Of a stretch of DNA of 64,000 nucleotides, positions 7,275-54,232 are shown in pieces (the first letter of the stretch is position 1; each line of letters opens with the position of its first letter). Source of the DNA: Octopus sinensis (taxonomy: Eukaryota); contig NW_021832413.1 of the NCBI RefSeq assembly GCF_006345805.1, positions 1 through 64,000 on the forward strand, read 5' to 3'. The translations under genes and the position numbers were made by a program. The notes beneath the pieces were generated by a model. The model had not been told where the DNA came from. It made no database searches and saw only the letters and a list, made by a program, of their open reading frames with translations.

Positions 7275-9209
7275 CAGTAAAACCTCTGGTGCTCGCCACC
7301 TCTGTTACTCGCCACCTCTATTGCTCGCCACATATTTTTCAAAAAATTAAAAATTTCTAGTAAATTTTGATAAATATTCTATTGCTCGCCATTTTCTAAA
7401 TCTCGCCATTAATTTTTAAAAATATTTTTTTTGGTTAAACTATTTTTTATATAAAATATTTCAACCACGCTAAATTTAACATGCGTAAGTGCACAAGATT
7501 GTCTTTTAATGAAAAACGTCGCATTATTGCGTACATGGAGGAGAACAAAAGTCTCACGATGGACCGTATAGCTTACATTTTTTCTTCTGTTTTGAAGAAA
7601 AAAATATCTCGAAGGGCTGTGAACGATTTAAGACTTGGAAAAGAGAAAATAATGTCCACTGATCCTATTTTCTCCAATAAGAAGAGATTATCTAACTTAA
7701 CTTATTCTGTTATTGACACCGAACTATTAACTTGGATGGAATACATTGAGCTTAGAGGGGGGTTTCTGGACGATAATTCAATTTTGTTGAAAGCAAAGAA
7801 CATTGCTAATATTTATGGAATTAAAGAGTTTAAAGCCAGCAATGGATGGCTAAGCAAGTTCAAGATACGGAACAACTTAAAATTGAGGACTTTACATGGA
7901 GAATCAGGATCTATTGCAGTTGATCAGAAACAAGAAATTGATGCATTTACTTCTTTGATCTCTGCAAAGATTCAACAATATAATGCTGAAAACATTTATA
8001 ACGCTGATGAAACTGGGATTTTTTACAAATCTATCCCTTCAAAAAGTGTTTGTCAGAAGGTTCGACATGGACATAAAATCCTTAAAGAACGGTTTAATTT
8101 TTATTTATTTTTTAGATTTTCTTTGTTGCTATGCTCAAATATGACCGGGACAGACAAAAAAATTCCACTTATGATTGGAAAGTTCCAGAAACCTCGCTGC
8201 TTTAAAAATTTTAAAGTCGAAAATTTTGTCGATTACTGTCATTCACCAAAAGCATGGATGACAAGTAAAATTTTTAACGAATGGCTTCTAACATGGGATA
8301 GGCATCTAAAAAAACGAAAAATTCTTTTAGTTGTGGATCGATGCCCATCCCATAAACTTTACGCTGATTTACAGTCAATTGAAGTTCTTTACCTACCTTC
8401 GAAGACTACAACAATTCTACAGCCAATGGATCAAGGAATCATTAGATCCTTCAAAGGACATTTTAATAAACTTAAATTTGAGTTAATGTTAGAAAAAATT
8501 GAAAATGGAGAAAATCCACTGGAAGCTCATAAAAAAATAACTTTAAAAGACAGTCTTCTTTTCACATATTTTGCCTGGAAAAAAGTAACGACCAAAACAA
8601 TTGCAAATTGTTTCGGACATTCAAAATGGATCGAATGTGAAAATCAATTCGAAAGACCAACTGTTGAAATTGATAATTATGATCAAATGGTAAATATCTT
8701 GAAAATATTGGACCCGGTGGATAAAGATGATTTTATTAATCATGAATTTACCGAAATAGATGAAATTGAAGATTACCTTAATATTGCTGGAGATTCTTTT
8801 CCACACAAATATGACGATGAAGATACTCATAATGACGAATCTCATGTGACTTCAGAAGAGGCTTTGAAAATGTTGAAAAAAATAAAGTCATTCTTTTATC
8901 AAAATGAAAATTTTGATATAAATTCGTTGGAACTAATCGAAACCGTTATTAAAAATATGGCTGAATTAAAAAAAACTATTAAAGATTTTTTTAGTTAATT
9001 TTTTCCTTTTAATTTCTTTCGATTCTCTTTGTTTCTTTGCTCAAATATGACTTGGAAGGCTCACTTATGATCGGAAAGTATCGAAAACGGAGATGTTTTC
9101 AAAATTTCAATGTCAACAAATTTATTGATTATTTCTATTGCTCGCCAAATTCTATTGCTCGCCATTTTTTCTTCGGTCCCGAAAATGGCGAGCACCAGAG
9201 GTTTTACTG
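7275..9209 (+). mobile_element. Full-length pogo/Tigger-like DNA transposon (1935 bp)
   Basis: Perfect TIRs CAGTAAAACCTCTGGTGCTCGCCA (7275-7298 and 9186-9209), TA TSD at 7273-7274 and 9210-9211, and repeated subterminal TCGCCA motifs. A paralogous empty site lies at 16063. Confidence 0.97.
7481..8998 (+). CDS. Tigger/pogo transposase (CENP-B-type HTH plus DDE_1) with a probable 24-nt intron at 8092-8115
   Basis: Motifs FKASNGWLSKFK, YNADETG, LLVVDRCPSH and LQPMDQGII. Removing GTTTAATTTTTATTTATTTTTTAG restores the family-like KERFSLLLCSN. Confidence 0.93.
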   Translation: MRKCTRLSFNEKRRIIAYMEENKSLTMDRIAYIFSSVLKKKISRRAVNDLRLGKEKIMSTDPIFSNKKRLSNLTYSVIDTELLTWMEYIELRGGFLDDNSILLKAKNIANIYGIKEFKASNGWLSKFKIRNNLKLRTLHGESGSIAVDQKQEIDAFTSLISAKIQQYNAENIYNADETGIFYKSIPSKSVCQKVRHGHKILKERFNFYLFFRFSLLLCSNMTGTDKKIPLMIGKFQKPRCFKNFKVENFVDYCHSPKAWMTSKIFNEWLLTWDRHLKKRKILLVVDRCPSHKLYADLQSIEVLYLPSKTTTILQPMDQGIIRSFKGHFNKLKFELMLEKIENGENPLEAHKKITLKDSLLFTYFAWKKVTTKTIANCFGHSKWIECENQFERPTVEIDNYDQMVNILKILDPVDKDDFINHEFTEIDEIEDYLNIAGDSFPHKYDDEDTHNDESHVTSEEALKMLKKIKSFFYQNENFDINSLELIETVIKNMAELKKTIKDFFS

Positions 9210-9299
9210 TAATTAAAATATTTCTTAATAAAATAAAACAATAAAGTAAAACGAGAAAGTTATAAATTAGTTAATGTCATGAGGAAATTATTATTATAA

Positions 9300-9640
9300 T
9301 ACATTCCGTAGGAACATTAACAAAGTTATAATCCGACACGTGTCACAAGCAAAACAATCTTCTGTTCCTTGCTCGTCCATGCCCCTCTGTTGCGGGCGAA
9401 ATCCCGCAAAGATTTTAGGTCGTCCCAGTTTTTGAAACTTTTGCCATGAAGTTTGAGATCCCTTTCAAGAACTGCCGGAAGAGTGGATCTAGATCTTCCA
9501 CGATATTTGTCTCCATGTTCGGAAAAATAATCATCCATTGCCCGATTGGTCGGAGCTCTGGGGTCCATTCGCAAAATATTAATAAATAATTTCCACCGGC
9601 CTCTAACGATTTCACCGACCTTCCGCGAGCTTGGTTCGAA
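9300..9640 (-). mobile_element. RTE-like non-LTR element, 3' end remnant
   Basis: GRWKLFINILRMDPRAP...RGRSRSTLPAVLERDL...ARNRGAW is the typical C-terminal tail of RTE ORFs. Confidence 0.7.
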
Positions 9641-10130
9641 ATGCCCACATTGAAAATCTTATCATAAGACAGTCACCCATTTGGCAACTCGATGCAATAG
9701 AATGCTTAATTCCGAGTAAACAAGGCGACATAACGAAATTTTAAATGCATACACATGCACCTATGCAGAAAATTTGGATTCAAAAATCAAAAAGGTTAAA
9801 GACTCACTCTATCCAAAGAGTTGACACTACTATCCTTAGTTAATTTACTAAATAATTAAGATTAATTTATTCAAGTTTAATGCAACTTGGGTCACTCGTC
9901 TTCTGAAAAAGTTAAATTTGTTGACTTAAATAGCAATATCAAAAAAATGACAATTTGGGAAATTAATTATTTTAAAAATAAAATGAATAACAACGTCATT
10001 AAGAAATGCCAAATCGCATAAAAAAAGCTCATTCGAAACGTAAAGAAAAAAAGTAAATTTACAAAAAATAACACTTATAGATGAATTAAAACACAACACT
10101 GATCACCAACCCGTAATAGCGACCACTCCA

Positions 10131-11245: not shown

Positions 11246-11519
11246 ATGGTTTTCTCCTCAAAGAAATTCCTGGAAAAATATGGCTGGAAAGAAGGTTTGT
11301 GTTATAAATTATAAAGGTTCGGGTCTAGGAAAAAACAGTCAAGGGCGAACCGAACTGGTCACCATTAAAAGGAATAGGGGAGGAATGGGGGTATGATTAC
11401 AATTTATAACAATTTAGGTCGGTTATCAAGAAGTACTTGATAAATTGGTAGCCGCACAGTTTATAAGGACCTACCAAAATAAAGAAAACGAAGCCGGAAA
11501 AAGGGCTAAGGCAGAATAA
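11246..11519 (+). CDS. Minimal G-patch domain protein, 74 aa, 3 exons (GPATCH4/PINX1-like N-terminus)
   Basis: Exons 11246-11294, 11317-11390 and 11418-11519 with GT-AG introns of 22 and 27 nt. Spliced product MVFSSKKFLEKYGWKEGSGLGKNSQGRTELVTIKRNRGGMGVGYQEVLDKLVAAQFIRTYQNKENEAGKRAKAE*. Splicing creates the G-patch consensus GWxxGxGLGKxxQG. Confidence 0.85.
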
Positions 11520-15997: not shown

Positions 15998-16004
15998 GTT
16001 TTGA

Positions 16005-17169: not shown

Positions 17170-18398
17170 TTAATGCAAATTGAACATTACAAGCTTTAAA
17201 GCATCGAATGGTTGGTTAATGAATTTTAAAAAAAGACATGAACTCAAATTCAAAATCCTTAGCGGCGAAAAAAACTCATGTAATCGTGATGGAATTCAAT
17301 CATTTTTAAAAGTTTTCCATGAAAAAATTGATCAATTTGGAGAAAATAATATCTTTAACATTGATGAAACTTGTCTTTTTATAAAAAAGACCCCAAAAAA
17401 ATCATTCGTACAAAAAAATAAAAAAGCGTCAGGGTCTAAAATAAATAAGGAAAAAATTTCTTTGCTCTTTTGCTGCAGTTATTCAGGCCAAAAATTTGAT
17501 CCTTTAATAATCGGGAAATTTAAAAATCCCAGATGTTTCAGAAATTTTAACTCTGAGGATTATGGTGCTATGTACTCATCTTCCAAAAATGCCTGGATGA
17601 CAAGAGATATTTTTATTTAATGGTTATTCTTAGTGAATGAACGAATGAAAATGGAAAAGAGAAAAATTTTAATAATTCTTGATAACGCTTCGTGTCATGA
17701 AAATAAATCGCTCTCAAATATCGAATTGCTGTTTTTACCCAAAAAAAATACACTCAATTCTTCAACCATTGGATAATTGGATAATCAAAGCTTTTAAAGA
17801 TAATTATTCGAAGGCGTTAATTGAATTTATTTGTTGTATAGATAAAGAAGATTTTTACTGCGACTTACTTAAAAAAATTAATTTACGCCAATCATTGATA
17901 ATAGTATCGAAATCGTGGCAAAATGTATCCTCCGAAATAATTACAAATTGTTGGGATAATACTTTCGGCAATGAAATATTTGTTGTTTCTGATAATCTGA
18001 CGGATGATGTTATATAACAAGTTGTAAACGAAGTGTTGGAAAATACGGAAAGCAGCGATAATGAAGAAAATTTTTACAGTGGTATGCAAAATAAACAGAC
18101 TACGGTCAAAGAAGTAGTAACAAAAGTGAATGAATTGGAAGAATCAGTTCTAGACATAACTCCAATTTTGTTAAATGATTTTTACTGTTTCAGACAAAAT
18201 TTGTTCAGTAGTTTGAAGAAAAATTATAGTTATGGAAAAAGGATCGATGACTATTTTTCAATAAATAATAATATTTAAGACTTTTTTGCATTAATTAAAT
18301 TATTAAATTTACATTGATATTAATTTTTTGACAAAACCTCAGTTTTGGAAAAATCTCAGTTTTTGGAACACTTAGTGTTCCAATTCAAGGTCGGACTG
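17170..18398 (+). mobile_element. 5'-truncated pogo/Tigger-like element (second family), degenerate
   Basis: FKASNGWLMNFKKRH, FNIDET, LDNASCH and LQPLDNWII across frameshifts. Right terminus ...AGGTCGGACTG followed by TA at 18399-18400. Confidence 0.87.
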
Positions 18399-23047: not shown

Positions 23048-23745
23048 TCACTGCTTACCGAAACCAGAAAATCCCATGATTTTGGCGACATCTGGTTCCT
23101 CAATTTCATCGGGGGCATTGACCGTGCGTTTACCAAAGGAGGAGAAGCCGAGAACAGAAGCAATATACGCTCCATCTGCATCAACTTCCACTGCTCTCTT
23201 CTTATTGTCCTTCATTTCCTTCCTCCTCTCCTTCCTATTCTCCTTCCTCTTCTCTTTCTCCTCTAACAACACTGCCAGTCGTTCATGGATGTCGTACTCG
23301 GGGACATGCCTCGACATCCGATTGGCCTCGATTCGCTCACGCACTTGGGAGACGGTCGACTTTTCCACCTTCATCGACATTCCCAGGTTCTTCTGGTCTG
23401 CAGAGGTCACATTTGAGGAATACGCTTTTTTCCGTTGATGTGGTCGAGGTAGTTGGTCGAGTCCTTTATCAGGCAGTCACAAACCTCGCAAAAATATCTG
23501 CGTGTTTCACTTTTAGTACCCTGGTTGGAAAGAGGTGGGTGCCGAGGCTGTCACCATACGGATTTGCCCTAATTTGGAGTCCAAATCAGGCTGTTAGGGT
23601 CAAACATGTTCATTACCTTCAAATCTCTTTGCTTTAGGGGTTCCGCTGTTGTTTTCTCTGGCCTTTTTGTGTTTTTTTTGCTTAAATATTTTGCGTATTC
23701 AGATAGACTTTTTGTGTGTTTTAAAGTATAGTTTTTATCAGCCAT
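23048..23745 (-). CDS. ZMAT2: Zinc finger matrin-type protein 2 / Snu23 (U4/U6.U5 tri-snRNP/B-complex factor), 207 aa, 4 exons
   Basis: Introns 23591-23616 (26 nt), 23498-23519 (22 nt) and 23398-23423 (26 nt), all GT-AG. The spliced ORF is open and gives [54 protein letters not shown], matching ZMAT2 motifs. Confidence 0.93.
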
Positions 23746-30330: not shown

Positions 30331-30949
30331 GGCAAATCATAAGTAAAGAGAAGGAAGCTGGAATCAATATTATCTGGATAATATATTATTAATAAGTTAT
30401 TTAACGTTAAAAACAGGCCGAATCGACGAGACCCAACAAAGGGCTCACAGATTAACCAAACGTTGGTCGCACGGTAACAAACGCCTCTGGAGGACCTGAT
30501 TAAACAGAACTCCAGTTTTTTTGCCAATGCCGAAGCGAAAGTGCCTAGCCACCTGGTGTGTTCTTGTTTGGGCCCGTAGAAAGATCAACGAGCGAGAATG
30601 AGGTTCATGGTTGAGTGCATCGGGATCACTTGACTTGCGTTCAGATTTTAGCGTGGTCTTGGTGTTTTAATTGCTGTGAACTGAGATGGTTAACAGCGGC
30701 CATCCTGGCATTATTGTCGTCAACGAGTCAAAGCTCAGGGAAAACCAGTCGTATACCGGTCACTGGACCTAAAATGGGGCAGAAATAATGTCAAAAATTT
30801 GTCTCCTCTCACTCAAGAGTGTCTCGGCCTGTCCAGGAGGCATGTGGACTATAGAATGGAGACTCAAACTCGTCGACGGATCCACCAAACCCAACAACTC
30901 CTCGACAAAATTTAAAATCTCAAATAATCCCACACCAATACCAAAGACT

Positions 30950-32822
30950 CAGAATGCTCAAATCTGTCGTTTATTGTCGGATCATCTTTTGGACGAGACG
31001 TCTCAATGGGAATAAATTCCTCCTTCTTAACAGAAATAGCATTCATTATCATCTCATTGCTAGTCAGTGCCTCCCGTGTTTGAAGTTCTGCCACTTTTCT
31101 CTTGAGAAAAACATTTTCCTGTCTAAGACCCGAATCGGGCGAGGCGAAGTCGTTTAGCTCGTTCAAAAGTACGGAGCATCCGAAGAGTCTCAAACTCCCT
31201 CAGTCGGTTCCTTAACTCCGCCAAAGTTTCCCCTTGTCGCTCGATTGTAGCCAAATGTCGTTCTCCCTTGCAGAGCGACCCAATGGCCATTAAATCATTT
31301 GCCTTTGGATATCGCTCTAACTGTGCTAATGCACGGTTCTTCTCATCTCGGGAATCTGCCAGTTCTTGCCTAAGTTGGACAAGTCTGTCCTTCGCTTCTT
31401 TGTGGGATTCATTCAACTTGGAATATGTCTGCTTATGCACTCTAAGATATGAGAATAAGGGTCACTTGAGTTGTGCTGCCATTTTCTTGATTTCTTGCTT
31501 GTATTTGGCTACTTCATCGGCACATTAATTACGCTTCAAGATAACTATTTCCTCGTCTTTTTTTCTGAGTAGATCCGAAAGTCTGTCAACTCGCGACTCA
31601 TTTCGTTGTTCGAGTCTGACACTCTCGCCCTCAAAACATGCATTTCCTGCTCCAACGAAGAGATTAAAGATTCCCTATCTTCACATTTTGTCTCCAATCT
31701 GCCAATTTCGATTCTAAAATAACAAAATATATTTCCATACTTTAATCGATTAACTGTCGTTTTAAACTCGGTAGAATTAACTTGGTCACCCGACTGAGAC
31801 TTGCGGTTTTCCATTTCTGTTGTTGATGACAGACAAACCAGAGTTTTTGAGTCGGATTGACTCGATTTTTGCTGCTTTTTTCTTTTGAGTGAGTTTTAAA
31901 AGCCGCTCTTCCTGTATGCAAATTGTCAACGAATGCTGCTTGATCTGCTCACGGAAATTCTGTGACTCGGTCTCGTAGTACTCTCGTTGGTCCGAAATCG
32001 CCCTCAACCTCAACTTATTCTCATTTTCCAAGGCGACCTTCAACGATTCGATTTCTCCCAGCAACTTGACCTAAAAAATTTAAAAAAAACCAAAGAAACT
32101 TTATCTTGCTTATAAGATTCCGCCGATTTGTCTAAATCTTGATATTTATGTCTTAGAGCCTCCAAATCTGATTCTCGCGACTCAAGTGTCTTGAGATAAA
32201 ACCAAATTAATAACCGAATTCAGTCTTTCCAAGGCGACTTGCATTAACTCTGCCTTTTCGGTCTCCTCCTTTGAAAGAAGGCTCATCCTCTCCTCTGCCA
32301 ATTCTCGGATCTTGGCCATTTCCCGACACGATTTTTCATTTTCTGAAATATAATTTTTAGTTGGAACCTTCGGCAACAGTTCTCTCCACTGCAAGTTTAA
32401 TCTGCCTCCTCAACTCACGGTCTGCATTCTGATCGGCCTCTTTAATGTCCTGAGCGTATTTTTGGCATATTTTTTCCATTTCTTGTACAGACTCGTCGTG
32501 GAGTGCTCTCGTCAATGCAAGTCGTTTAGTCAACACGGCGATATTCTCAGTGATAGCTGGGATATACTTCATGGAAATACAGTCAGACGGCTTATAGACC
32601 TCGTTGCCATCCTCCAAGTAATCTTCAATTTCGTGCAGTTTTTTTGGTTTGGATTCGTGAAACACTTGACAACGTCTTGCTTTGAAAAGACAAGACGTTG
32701 TCAAGTGTTTCACGAATCCAAACCAAAGAGTCGTCAAGTCCCTCCTTAGACTCCAATCTGCTCACCAGACAGTCCAAATGTGAAGACATAGCACTTCCAC
32801 CCTCCAAATATTCTCCCTGCAC
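30950..32822 (-). CDS. Multi-exon coiled-coil protein of unknown identity (needs 2-3 single-base corrections; gene or recent pseudogene)
   Basis: E/K/R/L-rich heptad ORFs join in frame on removing GT-AG introns 32343-32367 (25 nt), 32190-32214 (25), 32071-32099 (29), 31817-31838 (22), 31714-31740 (27) and 31442-31465 (24). Residual shifts fall in T7 runs (32639-32645 and 31558-31564) and near 31190. The ends are approximate. Confidence 0.7.
32643..32727. repeat. Perfect 37-bp inverted repeat with an 11-nt loop
   Basis: TTTGGTTTGGATTCGTGAAACACTTGACAACGTCTTG (32643-32679) is the exact reverse complement of 32691-32727. Confidence 0.97.
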
Positions 32823-33041: not shown

Positions 33042-33250
33042 TTAACAAGTAACTGAATAATTCGCGGAGTCAACTATATTGGTCTTTGAGAAGGTGTCTG
33101 TGCACGTGGAGTCCCACGCGAGGCATTTCCCATTACTCCACGGGAAAATGGTGACTCCATTTGGGCGTTTACCGTCTCCGCGGTCAAGCCCAACGGGTTC
33201 CAGTTCTGTCAGGAATCCAGCTGCTTGTAACGCAGCCGAAATAGTCTCGC
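33042..33250 (-). mobile_element. CRE-like element fragment (REL endonuclease region)
   Basis: ISAALQAAGFLTELEPVGLDRGDGKRPNGVTIFPWSNGKCLAWDSTCTD aligns with LEPVGLGRGDGKRPDGMT..CLIWDATCSD in 37570-40164. Confidence 0.88.
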
Positions 33251-34568
33251 ACCAGCAATGTTGGGTAGAAAACAAGGATTTGTTGCACGCCTAACTGAAT
33301 ATGTCTCAGAAGAGTATAACAATAAATCAGTTATTGGTGTACATTGTATTATTCACCAACAAGCACTTTGTTCACAAATGAAAAAATTTGAAAATACACT
33401 TAATGAAGTAAAACAAATTATTATATATATCCGAAACAATGCATTGAGACATAGACAGTTTCGTACAATTCTTTCCGGTAGTGAAATATCTGCTGAAGAC
33501 ATTTTATACCATGCACAAGTTCGCTGGCTATCACAAAGTGAAACAGCATGTCGTGTGCTTGATTTACGAAAAGAAATATCAAACTTTTACTCATCAAAGC
33601 AAAAAGAGTGTCCTTTGGATAAAAAAATTTCTTAATTGACTTAGCATTTCTGGTTGATGTACTCACATATATCAATAATTTGAATATATCTCTGCAAGGT
33701 AAAGACCAAACAATTTGTCGAATGTATAAAAAAATTAACGATTTTATGGATACATGCCGCCTACTGAAGATTTACATAGAAACAAATGAATTATTTCATT
33801 TTCAAAAAGTCAAAAATTTCATTGATGACAAAATAATTAATTATGACGATCTTACACCAAATACATTTAATACTATATTCGATTATATTTTGAAACAATT
33901 TGAAGAGCGATTTAACGAATTTAAAAAAATTGAACTCAAACTTCAATTAACTGCAGCACCACATACTGTTTCGATTGAGAATGCGCCATTGGAATTTCAA
34001 TTGAATTATTGAAATTAAAAAATGATTTAATTTTGATAAATAAATTTAATGAAAGCGAAGATTTGTTGAATGTATGGAAATCAGCGACAGATTATCCAAA
34101 TTTACGTGAAATGGCAAGAAATATTTTCGTTTTATTCGGAAGCACATGTATTTATGTGAGTCTACATTTCCAAAATGAAAAAAATTAGATGTAATTATAA
34201 TTTGCTAATGTTGCAATTTATATTATCGAAAATAAAAATAATTCACATTATAATTTGCTAATGTTGTAAATAATTTACTATTTACAGCAAGCATGGTTCA
34301 AATTATAAAACATCATTTTTTCAAAAATTTAAAGTTCGTTCATTAACTCAGAACGTTTTCTTTATATTAATTGGCCTTTTGATCGGTATTAGTTAATCGA
34401 CGTTTTTTTAACGGCTCGTATTCAACCGTATCTCATTATGAACCGGTCACAATAATTAAAAAAATTATTATATTAATATCGAAAAAATAATGCAGAAAAT
34501 GTGCGGCCGTGGAAGAGAAGGAAAAAAATGCTATGCGGCCGCAAACCCAAAAAGCTTGGGCACCCCTG
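33250..34568 (+). mobile_element. hAT transposon, 3' half (GTF2IRD2/Buster-like transposase, degenerate)
   Basis: APAMLGRKQG, HCIIHQQALC, VRWLS, NISLQGK and FGSTC-like dimerisation region. Right terminus AAAGCTTGGGCACCCCTG, i.e. TIR CAGGGGTGCCCAAG. Confidence 0.88.
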
Positions 34569-34740: not shown

Positions 34741-34748
34741 ATGTACTA

Positions 34749-36931
34749 TGTCACATGGGTGATCAGGCCCCTATGGGCAACCTGGTCTTTACGTGTTTCC
34801 ATGGCAACTACATAGCAAATATTTACTAAAAGGCCAACTAATATAAAGGCAAACGATACGAACTAATGATTGAACTTTAAATTTTTGAAAAAATGATGTT
34901 TTATATTTGAACCATGCTTGCTTTAAAATAGTAAAATTATTTACAACATTAGCAAATTAGAATGTGAATTATTTTTATTTTTGATAATATAAATTGCAAC
35001 ATTAGCAAATTATAATTTACATCAAATTTTTTGCCATGTTTGTAACAACTTTAACTCTAATTTTAACCCAAACCCTAAATTGGGAAGTGACAACATAAAT
35101 ATATTCAAAATCTAACCCTAACCTTAACCCAAGCCCTAACGTTGGCAAGTGACAACAAAATATATTCGAAATTTAATTTCCAAACCTCAAGCTGTCTCGT
35201 TAAATTGTAGTTTTCCACGTTTAGTTTGTCGTATAACGGCATAGCAACTACTTAGCAAATTATTACTAATAACTTTAAAAATTAATTAATAGATTTTTTT
35301 GAACAACTAACAATATTTAATAGTTATTTTTTTAACCGAGACATCAACACTGTTTGTTTCTCTCCATTTGAAAATTCGACCTAATCATAATTAAGGTTCG
35401 ACCTATACCTCTACGCGTGAATTGGATAAAATTGCACGTATTTCACAAGTATCGAATACTTGGATTCGAATTTATTCAACATCAATGCAGGATTTGTTCC
35501 GTAATCCTTTGCAATTCGAACCTTAATTAGATTAAAAATTAATTACAACTGTGTCCCCTATGGCATAATTGTATTTACTACAATGAACGCCCATCCTCCT
35601 ATTCATCCTCTTGTAGTATTCATCATCACCACCGATCGGTTGTATTTCGAGATTAAATGATGTTTCTGTTGACGATTCTTTAGGTTACTTAAAATGTCCC
35701 ACCTTCTACAGAGTCAATTATCGGTAACAGATTTGTCCCTAGAATCCCTCGGTAACGTTTAATGGGGTCTCATTCGAAAACGAATGCATCGTTGTATTGT
35801 AGCAATACACCGAATATTCGAGAATGGACACCCATTTATTTTCATCAGGGCACTTCAATTTCGCTATTGATCTCGTAATTGTCTGGTTAAAACGTTCCAC
35901 TATACCCTACAAAATAATGTATTCCATAAGATAACTTGTGATCTAGGGTTATTAGGTCTGCCGTGGATATGTTGAATTTTAAACCTCTCGCAAAGTACTC
36001 GAATCTCATTATTTTTGAATTCTGTCCCATTGTCGGATTGTAGAATCTGACAGGGACCATTTAGATAAAATAGGGACTCGAGATTTTTTGAAACCTCGAG
36101 TCCTGACTTGTTAATTAATGGCCTAGCAAAGCCAAATCTATGATAATTATAATCATAAAACCGGCTATAGACGTCAATAACGGATAGAATCCATTTGTAT
36201 CCTCCGTTGACGTTTTCAAACCTTTTCAGATCGATCAGATCTATTTGAAACCGCTCATTCGGAGCAGAGGCGAAAACATGGTTAGTTTCATCCGCGGTCT
36301 AAACGATTACTAAAACAGACTTAACTTTAAGTGGAAGAGAAAACTTGCAGATATCACACTCGGATATGACCTTTCTTACAACATCACTTTTCACGATGAA
36401 GTAATGACGGCGACAAAGAAATTCAATCTTGTTGACGCCTCCGTGAGACATCAAATGTAGAGAACGAGCATGGGTCTCCATCTCTGCTCGACAGTCCAAA
36501 GGAATAACTAATTTCTCAAATTTCCCTTTCAAATAAAGTCTTTAGATTAAAAAAGATTAATACTTATCATTTTTTTGAAAAAAATTGGAAGCTTTTTTGG
36601 CCAATCGGCGTTTGCTTCGAGCATTCATATCCTCCGGAAATATCCCGATTAACGCTTCCTTAATTTGATTGTATTCGTTAATATTTCTAACGTAACCCTT
36701 ATACACAGACATCACAAAGTGTGAGTAACCACGCTGTTAAAATTAATATACTTTTGGGTAAGCCATTTTTAAAAGATAATTCAAATGTAATTTTAAATTA
36801 GAGTAATTGATTATCTACACTCTTCCATATATATAAATTGCTATATTCAATATTTAATACCTTTTCTGTGATTTCCATAGAAACACGTAAAAGGACTGGC
36901 TGCCCATAGCGACCTAGTCACCCATGTGACA
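34749..36931 (-). mobile_element. Ginger2/TDD-like DNA transposon (integrase-type transposase), 2183 bp
   Basis: Imperfect 34-bp TIRs starting TGTCACATGGGTGA, TG..CA ends, 5-bp TSD TACTA (34744-34748 and 36932-36936). No LTR, gag or RT. Confidence 0.92.
35540..36766 (-). CDS. Ginger-type integrase/transposase (HHCC zinc finger plus rve DDE core) split by tiny introns; 3' end unresolved
   Basis: Introns 36540-36563 (24 nt), 36299-36325 (27), 36138-36161 (24), 35907-35935 (29) and possibly 36734-36751 (18). Splicing gives H..SHGG..C..C, ERFQIDLID, VIDVYSRFGFARPL, ILQSDNGTEF and PRSQGIVERFNQTI. A -1 shift occurs near 35760. Confidence 0.88.
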
Positions 36932-37519: not shown

Positions 37520-40500
37520 AGTCGACAGAATTAAGAGACTATTCAAAATTATTTAGAAAAATATGATAACTAGACAAAGCAGTTATTTTGAACTGCGCAT
37601 AAGATGACCTGGCAGTTCCCTCGGACGATCGCCAACGAGACTCTTTGGAAAAGATGACGAGTCTCGTTGGGATCCTTGTTTTGTCTGGCAATCTTCGACC
37701 CCAGCCGACGAAGGAAAGAAAGCGATTCTGGGCCGATGACCCCGGATGTCTCCACGGCTACTGGCGCAAAAATGTGGTTTCTGGCCAGGTACGAGTATTT
37801 TCTTGTTTTTGTGACCTCCGCATGTCTTGCCGCTGAGCCGGGCTCAGCAACTGATGAAATCAGGTTTTGCGGGGAGAATGTGTCGGAGCATGTCGCGTCC
37901 CAGATGAGGCATTTCCCGTGATCGAAGGGAAATGTTGTCATGCCATCTGGGCGCTTTCCATCTCCGCGACCCAACCCGACTGGTTCCAGCACATTAGGGA
38001 ATCCCGCAGATGCCAGGGCGCGGCTCACCACATCATTAAGCCCAGAGTGTTGAGGGAAACGTCCAGCGCTACGCCGGCAGGATAGCGGGTGCAGTCCTAG
38101 GGTGTCAATCATCTGGCCGCAGCGGCATTGATGTTCACGGCAGATGTTTAATCCCAAGCGCAGAGAGACTGCGATGCGGAGGCATTCGTTATCCAGTAAT
38201 GTCCCGACTGATACCATTGGGATAGCTGTCAGCCAGGCTCCTGAATACTTTTGGGACCCAGCAAGCAGGCAGCCCAGGCGGTGTTGATCAAGTTTACACT
38301 TGAGGAGGAAAAACTTGTGGTCCGAATAAATTCCGTCCCACTGCCGCTGTTTGGTCGAATCATCAGGAACTTTGAGACCATTAGCGGACCAGCATCTGAC
38401 AGCCGAAGAGAACTCAGTGTCCACGGGGGATTCAATAGCGGATTGGAGAATCTCGTAGACCAGAAAGCTGGTGGCGTGAGCAGAGGAAAGAAATGCTGGC
38501 AGGGAAAGATCGGCGGCAGAGCGCACACCGATGCCACCGTGGCTAACCGGGAGGATTGCCTGCTCCCAGCCGAGGTCATCAAACGGGGCATTAAAAATTG
38601 CTTCGAGGCATGCATTGAGGGCACGGTCGAAGCTGAAGAGGCCCACGTGATTTGTAAAACAGGGGGCACTTCTGAGGGTGAACATTAGCTTGGGGATTGC
38701 GAAGCAATTCTTCAATAGAAATAAAGCCGCATGGGAATCAATTGTCGTGAGCTTACTGGACATAGATATGAGATTCGAGGTTTTTTCGGACAGAGTTTGA
38801 TCCACTCCAGTGTTGAATATGGGGGAGCCCAAAATCTTGAGATTCGATGGCGTGGTAACTTGAATGTTCGATAAAAGCGAGTTGAAGGAACGAAGAATAT
38901 CGGAAAAATGGTGCGGGTCGTAACTGATGTTTATGATTTCAGATTTATTGGAATTAACTTCGAGACCAATGGCGTGCAATGAAGGGATTATGATTCTCAG
39001 GTCGTCAAGAACGGATTCAGATGTACCACCTATGGTGGCGTCGTCCAAGGACCAAACGTTGAATTTGGATGATACATTCCTGGCAACGTTATCCACAGCC
39101 AGAGCGAAAAGGAGAGGGCCCAAAGGGTCACCTTGCTGTACTCCATTACTGAACGGGATTGTCTGATTACCAGCGACAAGGAGGCTGGGCTGGCCGTAGG
39201 CCAACGCGACGAGACGGGAGATTGCTGGACAGCGACGGGTAGCGGATTCGAAAAAAGTGTCACGACGCACACAGTTGAAAGCATTAGCCAAGTCTATCTT
39301 GATAAGAAGACAAGGCTTGTCTTGCCGAACTTGGGAGGCAATCACAAACTTCCTCGTGGCGTGGACTGCTGCTTCGCAGCCACCCCGAACTCCTACGCCG
39401 AGTTGTATTGGGCGTAATTCGGACCCCAGCAATTTGATGGCTTGTCTGCAAGCTACCTTCGACGCCAGTCGGCGGAAGAGGCAACCCACGGCGATGGGAC
39501 GGACACCGCCTTCCTTTTTCCTCAGGGCAGTGAGATTAGCGGCAAAAAATAGGTCGCGGGCATACTCGGAGATTTCTCCGTTCAAAATTCGGTTCGTAAG
39601 AGCCGTTAGGGTCGATAGGAGGCGCTGACCGGCTTCACAGGTTTGGGGAGAGAGCATGTCTTTGACGTGTCCGGGCCGGAGGCCGTCTATGCCGCCACAG
39701 CTACCAGTTGAAAGAGAATTAATGGCATCGAGGACTTCCTCATCTGAGGCATGTGAGATTGGAAGGTCAGAATGGGTGATAAGGGGCCGTTGGTCGTCTG
39801 GAGGATTGGGGTGCTTCGCTTTTAGTTCTGTAAGGATTTGGGGAGTTATTTCGAGGGCCTTGGAATCAGATGCCAGTACTCGCACAGCGCCGGCAACGTT
39901 TCCTTCCAGTAGTTGGGCGTTTACACGTTCACGTAGACGTATGGCGTCACGGTTAATAGCCTCGTCGTTTTGTAGGACGCGGGGCTGGTGCGTCTGGTTC
40001 TTCCGTTGGGCCTTCCCTGTGGCACCTAGCCAACTAGAGAAATCCGAGGGACAAGGCATGTAGGCCAATATGTTAGCCTTAAATCGCGACGAAATAGAAA
40101 TGGGATGGATGTTATGGCCTCTGGACTGTTTATGGGTGCCTTCTTTAGGGAGACCGAAAGCCATTATGCCAAAACAGAAAAGATGGTTCCAGCTGGATGG
40201 GTCGTTAAAAGAAAGCGCTTTGTTGTAACGGATGATAAAGACTCGGCCGAGAGAATGCGCGCAGCCTTAGGTATTTTGACTGGGATAGTACGGACCCTTT
40301 TGGCTCGGGAAACCGACAAGAGGAAATCTTTCACTGATAGGATGGGTGTAATTGGTTGAGAATTATTGGAATCGGAAAGAATTTTGGAAGATACCGGCCG
40401 CGAACCGCGGGCAAGAGGGTGGCATGAGGGGCAGGTCCATTTGGACAAGGTTGAAGCAGCCAATTTAGAGATTCCAGCACAGGAAAGATGAAAGAAGCTT

Positions 40501-45213: not shown

Positions 45214-46079
45214 TCCAGAGGGATCTAAGGAGTTTAAAAATTCAATCCGGTTGAATTTTTAGAAAATAACAAAAAAATAAAGAAAAACAAATAAAAATGA
45301 ATAATTTAAAAACAAAAAAATAAAAAAAACAAAAAAAAAACTTTAAAAATTTGTAAAATAGTATAAACAAAAAAAATCTCTGCCGCCACGGCAACAACCT
45401 GTCTAATTTTTTAACAGCCAATTAAAATAATGCTTAAGAGCCTTTATAGTCCGGAGATTTAGCTAAGTGACCTTGATTAGACAAACCACTGGCGGAAATG
45501 GGGCAGCCGGAGATGCGGCAGCAGAGTAGCAGCAGCCAAAAAAGCGACACACAAAAAAGATTTAATTAATTACCTTAAGCTGACCGTTTTTTCTTCAGCT
45601 CCGTTTTTCCTCTTTCGGTTATCTATTTAAAAAATTATTTGTGAATAATAAAAAAGTTTAGGAAAAAAGGAATACCGAATATAAATTCTATTTTTACGAA
45701 AAACTTAACTAAATAGTTAATATTTTTACGCAAATTATTCTGATTGCGCTGTCAATTGGTGGTAAATTGTGTTAATGATTGTGCTAATGTGGTTTTAACT
45801 ATCAAAGTGTTTTTCAAAATCTGTTAATTGCACACTCTATTCAAGGTCGTGCAATCTGTAATTGCACATTCTGTCAAAGTCAAATATGATAATAGCTTTA
45901 TTTTGATTCATGGTCGATAATGATATATGCATTTAATTTTAAAGAGAAAATCATAGGATGAATTGAATTTCTTTATCGCGAATAATTGGGAGTTCATCAT
46001 TGTTAATATTCTCGCTGTCGTTTTCATCAAGGATATTCTTAATACGTGAGATTTTTGCCTCGAAGGTTTTAATGGACCT

Positions 46080-47620: not shown

Positions 47621-47965
47621 TTCAGGTATTGGTTGGGTTAGGGTTTGAAAAAATTTAATGTAGAATTTTCGAATGGAAAAAACTGATTAAAATTAAAGAT
47701 TTACTCAGGGGTTATAGCCAATTTTCGAATGGATATACAAAGATTGTTCACATGAAAAGAATCAAAAAAGGACAAAATAATTAATTTTATTTCACAAAGC
47801 ATTTCACACAATTTACATCATTTAAAATATGTTTTAATGTGCTTATCAGTCAAAATGGTTTGTTGTAATAAAAATATTATTTTAATTTATTTATTTTAAA
47901 GCATCTTTTAGTATATCATTAAATTGTACTTTAATTAACCTAATATATTGGTTGAATTTTATGAC

Positions 47966-48225: not shown

Positions 48226-48320
48226 ATTAATTTTCTAAAAATTGAAAAATCATTAATCAATTATTTCTCAGAGGTAACTCGGAGGTAACGAGTGGGGCAT
48301 AGTAATCCCTGAGGCATGTG

Positions 48321-50050
48321 ACATAATAAAATGGTATGGTGTTTGTCTGTCTGTCTGTGTGTGCACACCAACTTAAATTGGCAATACGATGTCTTCGACT
48401 TACATGATGAAGTCCTTAAAACCTTCCCCCCAAAAAAAATTAAAAAAATTTTCTGCATTTTGGTTAAAATGATAACTACAATGTCTCGACTTACATGATG
48501 AAGTCCTAAAAACCTTCCCCCCAAAAAAAATTAAAAAAAAATTTTCTGCATTTTGGTTAAAATGAACAACTACAATGTCCTCGACTTACATGATGAAGTC
48601 CTTAAAACCTTCCCCCCAAAAAAAATTAAAAAAATTTTCTGCATTTTGGTTAAAATGAACAACTACGATGTCCTCGACTTACATGATGAAGTCCTTAAAA
48701 CCTTCCCCCCAAAAAAAATTAAAAAAAAATTTCTGCATTTTGGTTAAAATGAACAACTACAATGTCCTCGACTTACATGATGAAGTCCTTAAAACCTTCC
48801 CCCCAAAAAAAATTAAAAAAAAATTTCTGCATTTTGTTAAAATGAACAACTACGATGTCCTCGACTTACATGATAAAGTCCTTAAAACCTTCCCCCCAAA
48901 AAAAAATTAAAAAAAAGTTTTCTTGCATTTTGGTTAAAATGAACAACTACGATGTCCTCGACTTACATGATGAGGTCCCTAAAACCTTCCCCCCCAAAAA
49001 AAATAAAAAAAATTTCTGCATTTTGGTTAAAATGAACAACTACGATGTCCTCGACTTACATGATGAGGTCCCCAAAACCTTCCCCCCAAAAAAAATTAAA
49101 AAAATTTTCTGCATTTTGGTTAAAATGAACAACTACGATGTCCTCGACTTACATGATGAGGTCCTTAAAACCTTCCCGCCAAAAATCAAAAAATATTTTC
49201 TGCATTTGATTAAAATGAACAACGTTAATGTCCTCGACATTCATGATGAGGTCCATTAAAACCTTCGAGGCAAAAATCTCACGTATTAAGATATCCTTGA
49301 TGAAAACGACAGCGAGAATATTAACAATGATGAACTCCCAATTATTCGCGATAAAGAAATTCAATTCATCCTATGATTTTCTCTTTAAAATTAAATGCAT
49401 ATATCATTATCGACCATGAATCAAAATTAAAGCTATTATCATATTTGACTTTGACAGAATGTGCAATTACAGATTGCACGACCTTGAATAAGAGGTGCAA
49501 TTAACAGATTTTGAAAAAACACTTTGATAATTAAAACAACATTAGCACAATCATTAACACAATTACCACCAATTGACAGCGCAATCAGAAGAATTTGCGT
49601 AAAAATATTAACTATTTAGTTAAGTTTTTCGTAAAATAGATTTATTTTCGGTATGCCTCTTTTCCTAAACTTTTTTATTATTCAAAAATAATTTTTTAAA
49701 TAGATAACCGAAGGAGGAAAAACGAAGCTGAAGAAAAAACGGTCAGCTTAAGGTAATTAATTAAATCTTTTTTGTGTGTCGCTTTTTTTTGCTGCTGCTA
49801 CTCTGCCTGCCGCATCTCCGCCTGCCCCATTTCCGCCAGTGGTTTGTCTAATCAAGGTCACTAAGCTAATCTCCGGACTATAAAGGCTCTTAAGCATTAT
49901 CTTAATTGGCTTGTTAAAAAAATTAGACAGGTTGTTGCCGTGGCGGCAGAGATTTTTTTGTTTATACTATTTTACAAATTTTTAAATTGTTTTTTTGTTG
50001 TTTTTTATTTTTTTGTTTTTAAATATTTGTTTTTTTTATTTTTTTTTTTG
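48321..50050 (+). mobile_element. Non-autonomous Helitron copy 2 (5' portion, ~9 satellite units at ~48385-49260), inverted relative to copy 1
   Basis: Starts ..TAATAAAATGGTATGGTGTTTGTCTGTCTGTCTGTG. Reverse complement of 45270-47620. Truncated where the R2/NeSL-like element begins. Confidence 0.92.
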
Positions 50051-53000
50051 TAGAGTCTGTTATGCAACGTGCTACTATCTCGATGTGTGCTCTACCTGGA
50101 CAACAAGAAACTAACAATATTATTAATAATAATATACCTAGAGCAGGATGGACACCCGCATCGGAGAGACAGACGTCCGATGGCAAGAACATCGTCTTTG
50201 CCATTGCAGAAGGGATCGAGTGCACGACCCGGGGGACTGGGTTAAATCCGCCCTTTCCCAAGTGTTTGGAAGAGCTTCCAGGATGCCCAGAAATGGGTGG
50301 CCTACCCTCCTTAAGTGTTTCAATCGACGCTTTAGCTCGAACCTATCGTTAGATGCACTGAAGAAGCTGGCCAAGACCCCTCCTCCTGGCTCGCGGGGGA
50401 GGACTGCCGCTGCGGTTACGCCGTCAGGATGCCCCCCGTGTTCTGAACAACACGAGCACCAGAGTAGTGAGTTATCGCTACTCTTGCAGGTTAAGGAGAT
50501 ATTTAGTAGGCATATCTCTGCGAATCGTGTTGTCCCCCTTGCGGACCGCAGAGTGACCCGAAAGATACCTCGGTGGCAACTCAGAAGTGACGTGATGGGT
50601 TGCATCAATCGTGCCATAGCTTACGCGATCGTGCGTGAGCCTCCGGAGACAATGGACGAGATTTCTCTCTATTTGTACTCGGCACAGACAACCTATGATG
50701 AAATCACTCAGAGGCCTGCCCCAAAGAGTAGATGGAGAGAAAACATTGCCGCAAAAGTAGCCGCAAGGAAAGCCGAGCTGGAAGCGCTGACTGGGCACAT
50801 TTTGAATGTGAGCAATGGGGTCAAGGGCAAGACTCCCCCCTTGGTGCGTACTTTACTTCGTCGGGAACGAGCTGCCAAATGGGACCTCAACGAGTTGAGG
50901 CGTGTCCGGGCAGAGAGGGAGGAGCTGATTCTCGTTTATCAGAAGAAGCTCTCAACTCATGAGTCTCGGTGTCAGCGCAGGCGGGAGAACAACCTGTTTG
51001 AATTTAATCGCAGGTCGTTCTATCGTCGGTTGCACGGAGAGACGAAGGAGGGTACCCAGCAAAAGGCCGAAATGCTTGACACATGGGGGAGTATGTGGAA
51101 AGCACGTCCTCGCAAGGGTGTGTCGTTTCCGTTTTGTGGACCCGATGCTCCCTTGATGACCGAATCTTGTGGTGTCTCTGACATCCGCAAGAAGTTCGAT
51201 GAAGCAGTAACCCGTCTCTCTGACTGGAAGACACCTGGGGTCGATAAAGTGTATAATTTCTTTATTAAAAATTGCAAACCTATCCATGATTGCATGTGTC
51301 GAGCAATCGAACAGTTTACACTAGACCCTGGCTCGATTCCAGAGTGGTTATGTACTGGGGTCACTTATTTGATCCCTAAAGTAGATAACCCTCCGCTCCG
51401 ACAGATTATCGTCCGATAACCTGTATGCCCAACCTGTACAAGTTGATGACTAAGGTGGTGGCTACTGAGGTCAGAAATTTCGTGGAGGTGAATGGGATTC
51501 TGTCCGAGAACCAGTTAGGTACTCGGCGGGATTGCCAGGGAGCTAAGGAGCAGGCACTGATCAACAAATGCCTCGCGAGAGCCCACGGAAACTCACTAGT
51601 GTCAATGTGGGTGGATGTGAAGAAGGCATATGACTCGGTTGATCATGCCTACCTCGTTGAGTGTCTGCGAAGGCTTAAGTTGCCAATGTGGTTTATCAAA
51701 TTTGTTGCAACTGTGATGGACAAGTGGAACGTCCATCTAAATTACAACAATGCGATATAGGCGAGGTGAAACTAGAGAGGGGCATATTAGAGGGCGACAG
51801 CATGTCTCCGCTGCTGTTCGTCCTCTGCCTAGAACCGTTGAGTAGAGTCCTCACTGCCCAATCGAACAAATGTCGATCGAACATGAAGGAGGGTGTTTTA
51901 GCACCAACCATCTCATGTTCATAGACGACATTAAGCTGTTCGCTCGGTCTTCAGAGATCCTCACTCAATGGGTAAAGTCCTGAAAGGTTTCATGAAGGCC
52001 GTGGGGTTGGAGCTCAACTACAACAAGTCGGCGACTAACACCCCTGTGTGCGGTGACCTAGTCAAAGTCTTGGAGGAACACCAAGGATATAAGTATCTTG
52101 GTGTGGTTGAGAGTCCAGCCTCATTAATCACACCCGAAACGAGAAAGTGTGTAGTGGAGGGTGTGCGTAGTAGGGCGGCAATGTTATGTAAGACTCGGCT
52201 CAATGCACGGAACTTATTTCATGCCTTGAACGAGTATGCCATCTCATTGCTAAACTACTACGTTGGCCTGATCGAATTCGAGCCGAGTGAGTACGATGAA
52301 ATGGACCTTATTGTCCGAAGAGTACTCCGAGAGAATCATGTCCACGTGTTGGCAAGCAATAAGGAGAGATTGTACTTGTCTCGCGGGCAGCTAGGACGTG
52401 GACTGAGTAACATCGTACACTTAAGTGAGCGAATTCTTACTAAGATGCACGACACCTTGTGGAGTGGGTCGAGTGTATCCCAAAGGAAGGCTGCCATCCT
52501 TGCTGCTGAAAAAGCGCGTGGTACACACCTAGGGACCATAAAAGGCTATGTGTCGGCTAAGTATGGTCTAGGTGCTACCCAAGTTAATGTGAAGGAGTTG
52601 ATCAAACTTCAAAAGGAGTCTTTAATTAAAAAGATCAACTTAAAAGTCCTTCACAAGACTCTCTTTAGCAGCTGGACAACCCGCACATTGACGTATCGTC
52701 GTCATCTACGTGGCTGAAATATGGAATAACTCTCCCCGATCAGAAGGGTTGTTCTCATATTTGCAGGATAGGAACTTTTTTAATGGTCAACGGAAACAGT
52801 GTAACCACTGTAAGAGTAAGGCAATGACCGTTGACTATTTAGCCACGAAGTGCGGGAGTGCTTTACCATGATTACACATGGAGGCATAACGAGGTGGTGA
52901 GGTCCCTCCATCTTTTGCTCTGCAATAAGTACGGCTTGAGGCGGTCCAGAAAGTTGCGAACCCATCGAGTTCAATCGGTGTGTGAGAACTCGCGGGTGTG

Positions 53001-53300
53001 CATTAAGGTGGATACCCCCATACGCACCTCGATTGTTGTCCAGCACAACAGACCCGACATTGTGGTCCACGATAGGTCACCGGGGAGATTGTTATCGTGG
53101 AGGTGGGCATTACGTGCCTAGACCGTTTGCAAATAGTGGAGTGGAGAAAAGGAGGAAGTATGACCTCCTTGCAAACGAGCTAGGAGTGATGCACCAGTGC
53201 AAAGTCCATGTCATCCCGTGTGTGATGACATGGGATGGACTGGTCACCAAATACCACAAGCGGTACTTAAGACAGTTGGATGTAGATAAGTCTCTACACT
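50051..53300 (+). mobile_element. R2/NeSL-like non-LTR retrotransposon (single RT-REL ORF with about 8-9 single-base frameshifts); 3' end interrupted by hAT
   Basis: DWKTPGVD, YRPITCMPNLYK, ENQLG, WVDVKKAYDSV, RGILEGDSMSP, MFIDDIKL, YKYLG, CxxC..H, RHNEVV, HNRPDI, EVG, KRRKYDLLANEL and TWDG, recovered across frames. Confidence 0.93.
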
Positions 53301-53301
53301 G

Positions 53302-54232
53302 TAGAGGTTTTCAAACACTGCGCCGCGGCACATTTTTGTGCCGCGGGACGATATAAAATGTGCCGCGTGAAGATCTATATTTACTTATTTTTTGTTTAAT
53401 TTTTAACTTAAAAATTATTTATAATGAAACAATTATAATAAATTATAATCACGTTGCTATTTGTTATGTCTGTGCATTGGAGTATTCGTCATTACAAATC
53501 ATCTTTTTTATCTATGGGTTTTGACTGTTGTGGCACTGGAAATAGTTTACCACAGTGCCTGATTTGCATGGAGGTGTTGTCGAATGAATCAATGGTTCCA
53601 TCTAAACTTCGTAGACATTTTTTATCTAAGCACCCGGAATATAAAGATTATTCAATTGATTATTTTAAAGAATTAAGCAAAAAACATAGGTAGTGTTAAT
53701 AATTATATATATACATATTTAGAGTAAGTAAAAAATCATTTTCAAAATCATTTGGAAAATCAGAAGATGCAGTAAAGTGCTCTTATCTAGTATCGGAATT
53801 GATTGCCAAGAAAATGAAACCTCATACAATTGCCGAAAATCTTATCCTTCCAGCATGCAAATTAATAGTCCGAACAATGTTTGGCGTGGAATTTGAAAAA
53901 AAATTATTCAAAATTCCCTTTTCGGACAATACTATTTGTCGAAGAATTAGTACAATGTCGTTTGATATTGAAGAAAAAGTGGTATCTATAATGAAAAACA
54001 ATTTATATTCATTGCAAATTGACGAATCAACTGACATAACAGGAATTGCACAGTTGCTTATTTATATTCGTACTGAAAAGTCAGAAAGTATTATTGAACA
54101 ATTTCTTTTCTGCAAGACATTAGTTACTACTACTCGTGCAATTGATATGTACAATTTGATGTTTGATTATTTTAATCAACATAATATTTCCTTTAAAAAT
54201 TGTGTTGGTGTATGCACAGATGGGGCACCATC
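53302..54232 (+). mobile_element. hAT transposon, 5' half (ZBED8/SCAND3/Buster-like) with a 33-nt intron at 53690-53722
   Basis: Left terminus TAGAGGTTTTCAAAC; BED finger PQCLICMEVLSNESMVPSKLRRHFLSKH; KPHTIAENLILPA, LQIDESTD and CTDGAP. Intron removal joins ORFs 53454-53693 and 53799-54284 in frame. Confidence 0.9.

Follow-up and report, generated by a model that had tools for sequence, protein, structure and literature searches.

The 64,000-nucleotide window analyzed here (positions 1-64000 of VCDQ01006206.1, an 86.8-kb unplaced contig of the assembly GCA_006345805.1, labelled Octopus sinensis) raises the question whether segments of 22-33 nucleotides (nt), which begin with GT and end with AG and interrupt both host genes and the transposases of three DNA transposons, are true introns, and if so, from which organism they come and how they came to sit in mobile elements. 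Our comparison of the window with homologous proteins and loci confirms, at the level of sequence, that these introns are real. Tiny introns themselves are already known from dicyemids; the new part is that three cut-and-paste transposons of the Tigger, Ginger and hAT types carry them and the closest relatives of these transposons do not. The best explanation as a whole, and one that we consider likely, is that the contig comes from a dicyemid and that the transposons gained introns of the host type within this lineage.

An earlier note on this DNA had listed 17 such segments on the strength of restored reading frames. All 17 were located, with GT...AG ends and the claimed lengths, but the restored frame as such turned out to be no evidence of an intron. 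We counted the excisions of 20-35 nt that link two open stretches of at least 40 codons over the whole window: 466 pairs of open reading frames (ORFs) could be joined in total and 126 of them by GT-AG excisions, exactly as many as the 256 dinucleotide pairs join on average. Since GT-AG joins only an average number of ORF pairs, the intron case must rest on homology, and this window-wide test was dropped as intron evidence. The lesson for the method is that frame restoration by a short GT-AG excision in AT-rich DNA has no statistical weight, whereas an excision defined by homology does.

The homology was evaluated by an excision scan, in which excisions of every length from 12 to 48 nt, with a start no more than 15 nt away from the annotated donor and any bases at the ends, were scored against 4-5 homologues. 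This gave about 1,150-1,180 candidate excisions at each of 10 junctions (three in ZMAT2, one in Tigger, five in Ginger, including a newly found one, and one in hAT). The top-scoring length was the annotated length at 10/10 junctions (26, 22, 26, 24, 24, 27, 24, 29, 28 and 33 nt), and the GT-AG option, with 1-9 GT-AG candidates per junction, ranked from 1st to 8th. Multiplying the per-junction chances, we estimate a joint chance of about 1e-19 to 1e-20. Since homology fixes the length and the GT-AG borders, the scan indicates discrete insertions with spliceosomal boundaries and not repaired decay. One could argue that the transposon segments are artefacts nevertheless, that is, decayed pseudogenes repaired via convenient GT...AG pairs. 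A chance case does exist (a 35-nt GT-AG segment in the 3' half of a hAT copy), real frameshifts are present in a Tc1-like copy, in the same hAT 3' half and in a coiled-coil gene, and the average yield of GT-AG joins points in the same direction. However, at each of the 10 junctions the GT-AG pair stands among few equal-scoring offsets at a length dictated by homology, and random decay would produce indels of 1-2 nt and scattered stops rather than discrete AT-rich insertions of 24-33 nt which spare the conserved motifs. Thus an artefact is very improbable.

The form of the segments is uniform. All 19 that we examined (12 host and 7 transposon introns, including a second 24-nt candidate in the coiled-coil gene and a fifth Ginger intron) have GT at the 5' end and AG at the 3' end, and their lengths of 22-33 nt lie inside the published dicyemid range. 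They start with GTA, GTT or, once, GTG: the third base is A or T in 18/19, GTA is present in 8-9 of the 19, depending on the donor of the fifth Ginger intron, and GTT in most others. The mean GC content is 0.30 in the host introns versus 0.43 in their flanks, and 0.18 in the transposon introns versus 0.37. Lengths are 24-33 nt in the transposons versus 22-29 nt in the host genes, and the suggestion of the earlier note that the transposon introns match the size window of the host is borne out by this similar length, the GT...AG form and the AT-richness. After excision the proteins are colinear with their homologues at the 10 junctions by the scan and alignments, and at G-patch intron 1 by Pfam. 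Homology thus backs 9 of the 17 introns listed earlier, and Pfam one more, whereas the coiled-coil introns and G-patch intron 2 have the continuity of the reading frame and their AT-richness in their favour. The exact spliced products of ZMAT2, Tigger and the G-patch gene had no match in the protein collection.

Could the three interrupted transposase genes be domesticated host genes with ordinary host introns? Genes derived from pogo (CENP-B, TIGD), GIN1/GIN2 and ZBED/FAM200 genes are common in animals, the introns of GIN genes are conserved (PMC2836005), and the AT-rich composition of the three genes resembles the host background. However, the Tigger gene lies in a complete pogo/Tigger transposon (7275..9209, + strand), whose ends form a perfect 26-nt inverted match (7273-7298 / 9186-9211) made of the outer TA, the target-site duplication (TSD), and a 24-nt terminal inverted repeat (TIR) beginning CAGTAAAACC; subterminal repeats are also present. 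Its intact transposase ORF of 505 codons (7481-8998) contains the Pfam domains DDE_1 (130.6 bits) and HTH_Tnp_Tc5 (35.5 bits). The GT-AG intron of 24 nt at 8092-8115, which homology defines, is in frame, free of stops and has a GC content of 8%. None of 60 homologues contains the eight residues that it would encode (the earlier note had named their presence in homologues as speaking against an intron), and in the alignment these residues are also missing from the second, decayed pogo-like copy of the window (17174..18275, + strand), an intron-free comparator that reads KINKEKISLLFCC without the 8-residue insert. The segment is likewise missing from the DNA of two related copies, L005 on another contig of the same assembly (48% identity) and L006 (53%). 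In the excision scan the GT-AG option ranked 2/1178 and was the sole GT-AG candidate. The DDE_1 match becomes only 2.4 bits better on splicing because the intron falls at the margin of the profile, and the alignment of the 60 homologues was used instead. Between the ORF stop and the 3' TIR of the element lies a decayed partial duplicate (9014-9131) of the transposase region 8108-8235, with 74-84% identity, which starts within a few bases of the border between the intron and exon 2.

The second element is a Ginger2/Tdd-like transposon of 2.18 kb (34749..36931, - strand). Here too the ends are those of a mobile element and not of a domesticated gene, even if the copy appears partly broken: the termini are TGTCA, the TIRs begin TGTCACATGGGTGA and extend over at least 47 nt at 81% identity, and a TACTA direct repeat is found at both flanks. 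The CCGG/CCGT TSD of Ginger1 was not found at this element. It holds an integrase-like gene only (about 35324-36712), with rve and H2C2 domains and no reverse transcriptase or RNase H. Tigger and Ginger are true transposons, structurally complete, and not domesticated genes.

Four introns of 24, 27, 24 and 29 nt had been claimed for this gene, and all four are backed by homology (36540-36563, 36299-36325, 36138-36161, which is in frame and contains no stop, and 35907-35935). At least one more had been overlooked, the 28-nt intron 5 at 35522-35549 (25 nt with an alternative donor), which was recognized by the C-terminal alignment and the excision scan; a GC-AG intron of 36 nt at 35381-35416 is tentative. 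With the four segments removed, the protein aligns without a gap at each of the four junctions to 11 homologues, e.g. VIDVYSRF/GFARPL and NNPRSQ/GIVERFNQT (the slash marks the junction). Pfam rve scores 54.9 bits for the spliced protein versus 44.3 bits if the in-frame 24-nt segment is kept, a gain of 10.6 bits, and zf-H2C2 scores 23.3 bits, just below the cut-off. The nearest relatives, P0121 (genomic, from Dictyocoela muelleri, 49% identity) and P0125 (41%), are contiguous intronless ORFs.

Two further candidates in the Ginger region were rejected. An 18-nt GT-AG segment upstream of the gene (36734-36751) is unneeded, because the homologues begin at the internal ATG at 36712, and an origin of introns 1 and 5 from one another by intron duplication or reverse splicing was dropped, as the score of their likeness does not leave the range seen with shuffled controls. 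The penultimate exon is bracketed by the arms of a perfect 14-nt inverted repeat, TAATTAAGGTTCGA, at 35388-35401 / 35516-35529, the first of which lies inside the tentative GC-AG intron while the second overlaps intron 5 at its 3' end. Among the named relatives of the Tigger and Ginger transposases, the best ones in both cases (41-49% identity) belong to the microsporidians Dictyocoela muelleri and D. roeselum (hits P0002, P0006, P0008, P0121-P0123 and P0128), where the Ginger relatives are mis-named 'Gag-Pol polyprotein'. These matches may reflect horizontal spread of transposon families among aquatic parasites and hosts.

The third element is the 5' half of a Buster/FAM200-ZBED5-type hAT transposon (53302..54233, + strand), which reaches from its terminus, with the motif TAGAGGTTTTCAAAC at 53302, to a truncation by another insertion at ~54233. 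No inverted TIR partner was found within the window, and the pair of TIRs and the 8-bp TSD of a complete element are not seen. Even so, the copy keeps a hAT-like terminus and is truncated by another insertion, and this speaks against domestication as the ends of Tigger and Ginger do; we consider domestication of the three genes hardly credible. Coding starts at 53466, and the 33-nt intron is at 53690-53722. A tblastn search with the nearest homologue (P0138, 45% identity) leaves an 11-codon gap exactly over this segment, which has in-frame stops; the alignment gives the conserved blocks the same spacing as in the closest homologues, and the GT-AG option ranked 4/1178 in the scan. Homologues number 229 at E <= 1e-30 and the nearest bear FAM200-ZBED5 RNase-like domains, while Pfam DUF4371 stays under its cut-off with 18.4 bits. 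For the two nearest homologues the coding ORF is contiguous, but both are from Logan contigs, which could be transcripts.

The window also contains the 3' half of a more divergent hAT copy (33231..34185, + strand), without an intron and with a frameshift at an A7 run near 33620. The 35-nt GT-AG segment mentioned above was rejected here, since splicing it out would cost the protein the conserved LAFLVD motif, and the A7 frameshift accounts for the break. Both hAT fragments break at the same transposase residue (…CTDGAPS/APAMLGRK…), with the 3' half lying upstream of the 5' half, and against the same homologue they show 45% (53466-54233) and 26-28% (33231-34185) identity.

Among the host genes, the strongest case is ZMAT2/SNU23 (23048..23745, - strand), with four exons and a spliced ORF of ~205 amino acids (aa) from ATG to TGA. 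Its three introns (23591-23616, 26 nt; 23498-23519, 22 nt; 23398-23423, 26 nt) are defined by homology: the spliced protein matches human ZMAT2 (PDB 5o9z_N) with E 7.5e-42 and without a gap over all three junctions (RDLK/PDLDSKLG, FQPG/YFCEVCDC and NGKKH/QKNLGMSM), and the GT-AG options ranked 5, 2 and 1 in the scan. A gene for a small G-patch protein of 74 aa (11246..11519, + strand) has a 22-nt intron at 11295-11316 and one of 27 nt at 11391-11417. The Pfam G-patch match (47.4 bits, residues 6-44) runs across the first junction, and the second is suggested by the GTATGA...TTTAG form and the resulting extension of the ORF.

The third host gene (30915..32789, - strand) encodes a coiled-coil protein for which Pfam, PDB and NCBIfam gave nothing informative and no homologue or family was found. 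ORF continuity and a lower GC content in 4/7 segments point to introns at 32343-32367 (25 nt), 32190-32214 (25 nt), 32071-32099 (29 nt), 31817-31838 (22 nt) and 31714-31740 (27 nt) and to two 24-nt candidates at 31509-31532 and 31442-31465, and the excisions yield long frames rich in E, K and L. The gene may be a pseudogene or may be hurt by long-read indel errors, and its introns are plausible. Its 5' coding part contains a perfect palindrome (32643-32727; arms of 37 nt, loop of 11 nt) which breaks the frame and could be a true foldback duplication or a long-read assembly artefact. The frameshifts near 31560 in this gene and near 33620 in the hAT 3' half each coincide with an A7 homopolymer run, which suggests uncorrected long-read indel errors on contigs of presumably low coverage.

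Which organism, then, does the contig come from? The window has several traits in common with dicyemid genomes: ultra-short introns in conserved metazoan genes, a GC content of about 37% (37.0% overall), repeats and an association with octopus. The genome of Dicyema japonicum, sequenced from animals collected from O. sinensis, has 36.7% GC and 49% repeats including many copies of long interspersed nuclear elements (LINEs) (PMC6736024). The median intron length of dicyemids is 27 bp and two thirds of the introns are shorter than 30 bp (PMC6543705), the ultra-short introns having been published since 2010 (Ogino et al., 2010, as cited in PMC6543705). Among 51 animal genomes introns below 30 bp were reported only for myxobolids (myxozoans) and D. 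japonicum, in which the splice signals are reduced to GTa and AG (PMC13644364). The introns of the window, at 22-33 nt, have the same GTa/AG signals as those described from dicyemids (Lu et al., 2019, PMC6736024; Zverkov et al., 2019, PMC6543705; PMC13644364, 2026), and the high intron density, the repeats and the ~37% GC of dicyemid genomes recur here as well.

The contig itself is in agreement with an origin outside the octopus. A divergent histone H3 gene (6549..6959, - strand), an intact intronless ORF, encodes a protein that recurs unchanged on 8 contigs of GCA_006345805.1, and this H3 variant and the LINE family of the window are confined to contigs of at most 1.3 Mb; the locus around it, L003 (VCDQ01006206.1:4549-8959), is 100% identical to window positions 4549-8959 at the same coordinates. 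The background of the window is AT-rich (~30% GC), broken up by LINE fragments with 45-52% GC. The RefSeq annotation has a single gene in 20.7 kb of VCDQ01006206.1 and almost nothing else is annotated there. Over most of its length the ZMAT2 of the window is about equally close (~40-55% identity) to its counterparts in insects, molluscs and hemichordates, with only about 50% identity to bilaterian ZMAT2 in general, and no octopus protein is present among the 120 ZMAT2 matches listed. We conclude that the contig is very probably dicyemid DNA co-assembled with that of its octopus host, and infer D. japonicum or a relative, a kidney parasite of O. sinensis, as the donor.

It is unlikely that the contig is genuine octopus DNA or belongs to some other organism with tiny introns, such as a myxozoan, a ciliate or a microsporidian. 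To be sure, the record is labelled O. sinensis, and the best named Tigger and Ginger matches come from the microsporidian Dictyocoela. However, a ZMAT2 gene of 205 aa with 3 introns and 40-50% identity to bilaterian proteins argues against a microsporidian, and the standard genetic code of the window ORFs, with the Tigger ORF terminating in TAA, argues against a ciliate with reassigned TAA/TAG. The occurrence of related sequences on small contigs only, the restriction of animal introns below 30 bp to myxobolids and D. japonicum (PMC13644364) and the documented pair of O. sinensis as host and D. japonicum as parasite (PMC6736024) speak for the dicyemid.

Judging from loci L001-L005 and the whole window, the O. 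sinensis RefSeq/GenBank assembly appears to contain dicyemid contigs, and proteins of such presumed dicyemid contigs carry the label 'Octopus sinensis' in NCBI/UniRef. The 90%-identity cluster of the LINE ORF at 51968-52717, with 18 proteins whose named members all bear this label, and the Tigger-like P0003 are examples. In our literature searches we did not come across any report of dicyemid contigs contaminating the O. sinensis assembly. Contaminant contigs of this kind affect studies of gene content, transposons and horizontal transfer in cephalopods.

How did the introns get into the transposons? The earlier note had proposed that the transposons acquired introns or shrank them to the size that the host spliceosome accepts. 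Acquisition fits, since the relatives are without the segments; for shrinkage nothing was found, as none of the relatives compared has a longer intron at the corresponding site. The alignment of the transposases to their homologues, which had been suggested as a way to tell shared introns from lineage-specific ones, showed that the nearest relatives are intronless at these sites, and the intronless comparison loci include one from the same assembly (L005), one from Dictyocoela muelleri (L008) and four others (L006, L007, L009 and L010). Because the closest transposase relatives are without the segments, the introns in the transposons are, by this comparison, most likely lineage-specific gains rather than shrunken older introns. 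DNA transposons copy as DNA and keep their introns, and retroelements pass through RNA and would lose them. This explains the intronless LINEs of the window, whose ORFs are contiguous and need no intron, as had been claimed. The sequence of events was probably as follows. The dicyemid spliceosome acts on introns of ~20-35 nt defined by little beyond GT(a)...AG, as the ZMAT2, G-patch and coiled-coil genes of the window illustrate; three resident cut-and-paste elements (the complete Tigger, the complete Ginger2-like element and the truncated Buster-type hAT) gained introns of this type after their families settled in the dicyemid lineage; and a full-length transposase from then on needed a spliceosome able to remove ultra-short introns.

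Several points weigh against a dicyemid source with introns gained in resident transposons. The dicyemid origin is circumstantial, and splicing is read from DNA only. Each intron-bearing transposon family is seen as a single copy, and of the intronless loci used for comparison four are from Logan assemblies and could be cDNA from which introns are already gone. Neither the Tigger intron nor Ginger intron 3 shifts the frame or contains a stop, so that each, taken alone, could be a tolerated 24-bp insertion. The Ginger gene contains a stretch of ~69 nt (roughly 35686-35754) with four in-frame stops, which no single GT-AG intron and no simple pair of introns removes, and consequently this copy may be defective. 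Finally, the coiled-coil gene has frame breaks that introns do not explain (at the A7 run near 31560 and near 31150).

DNA transposons with introns are known, namely the P element, Ac and pogo, and the pogo element of Drosophila has one short intron. The Tigger element of the window shares HTH_Tnp_Tc5 and DDE_1, TIRs starting with CAGT and a TA TSD with pogo/Tigger elements in general, but differs by its 24-nt intron, for which neither the 60 homologues nor the two related DNA copies have a counterpart at that site. The Ginger element agrees with Ginger2/Tdd (Bao, Kapitonov and Jurka, 2010, PMC2836005) in rve and H2C2, in the missing reverse transcriptase, in TGTNR termini and in TIRs, and its TACTA TSD, an AT-rich one of 5 bp, is like that of TDD-4/5 (PMC2836005). 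Some Ginger1 genes have 1-4 ordinary introns (PMC2836005), whereas the Ginger gene described here has at least 5 introns of 24-29 nt, and its nearest relatives (41-49% identity) are, unlike it, intronless. The Tc1/mariner elements Sardine, Thon and Anchois of Paramecium, which also live in a genome with tiny introns, have ORFs for which introns are predicted (Arnaiz et al., 2012, PMC3464196) and are, by analogy, a precedent for the uptake of host-type introns by transposons. However, Paramecium is a ciliate, and those introns are only predicted, without a comparison to intronless relatives (PMC3464196). The published dicyemid intron studies deal with host genes, whereas here introns are also present in transposons, in a sequence filed under octopus; our literature searches turned up no study of dicyemid transposons or of introns in them. 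The finding thus combines known kinds of things, and its added value is the lineage-specific gain of introns in transposons and the exposed contamination.

One consequence for the transposons would be a dependence on host splicing, which the earlier note had likened to the control of the P element. The likeness to IVS3 of the P element is that the transposase needs host splicing and that retention of the intron gives a truncated protein; the introns described here are 10-20 times shorter, and regulated retention is known for the P element, whereas here control of the transposase by splicing is pure hypothesis. In such a scheme, retention in certain stages or cells would yield truncated DNA-binding proteins or a crippled transposase that repress transposition. 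The products of retention were computed. A retained hAT intron gives a product of 75 aa with the zinc finger only, retained Ginger introns 1, 2 and 4 give a stop at about 51, 129 and 245 aa, the first two before the catalytic core, and a retained Tigger intron or Ginger intron 3 adds 8 residues each within the catalytic core; altogether, 4/5 of the well-supported Ginger introns and the hAT intron bring a stop or a frameshift into the unspliced mRNA. A length divisible by 3 is more frequent in the transposon introns (5/7) than in the host introns (4/12), a weak signal in a tiny sample (binomial p ~0.045 by our own calculation). Yet the same formal properties are found in every intron-bearing gene, and passive gain by the process that shaped the host genes is simpler and explains everything seen. 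Thus it is not likely that the introns serve as a regulated switch.

Passive gain in the dicyemid lineage leads to a more far-reaching idea, which we put forward only as a speculation with the odds against it. Intron creation in dicyemids would be frequent and would still go on, and a record of it would be kept in their DNA transposons, at least 7 introns having been gained in 3 families; a full-length transposase would then be made only where ultra-short introns are spliced, which would lock the elements to the parasite and block their productive transfer to the octopus. If this were true, the minimal GT(a)...AG signal and the length window would let short AT-rich insertions become introns readily, and the excess of in-frame lengths and the two stop-free introns could be early stages of the process. 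Transposons are datable newcomers to a genome, and an intron that they carry and their relatives lack documents intron gain with unusual clarity. Surveyed across whole dicyemid genomes, introns could show how fast and by what mechanism they are created under minimal splice signals.

The remaining features of the window are mostly repeats and gene remnants. LINE sequences comprise a contiguous GC-rich ORF of 864 aa (37570..40164, - strand) and similar GC-rich fragments at 12736-15997 (- strand) and 50148-53356 (+ strand), recognized by the ORF list and their composition. A compositional split is seen between the LINE fragments (12736-15997, 37570-40592 and 50148-53356), with 45-52% GC, and the DNA transposons, with ~27-42%, which resemble the AT-rich background. 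A fragment of a P5-type (ATP13A-like) cation ATPase (41214-42481, + strand, ~43% GC) is contiguous over the phosphorylation motif, and NKTGT in place of DKTGT together with in-frame stops marks it as a pseudogene. A satellite of 93-95 bp forms three arrays (46062-47624, 48385-49266 and 58486-58804), the second in opposite orientation to the first, and an unrelated 74-bp satellite at 63085-64000 continues past the end of the window. Near-identical fragments of a Helitron-like helicase (44782-45213 and 57211-57513) lie ~0.8-1 kb upstream of the first and the third array, and this pairing of helicase fragments and satellite arrays suggests a segmental duplication.

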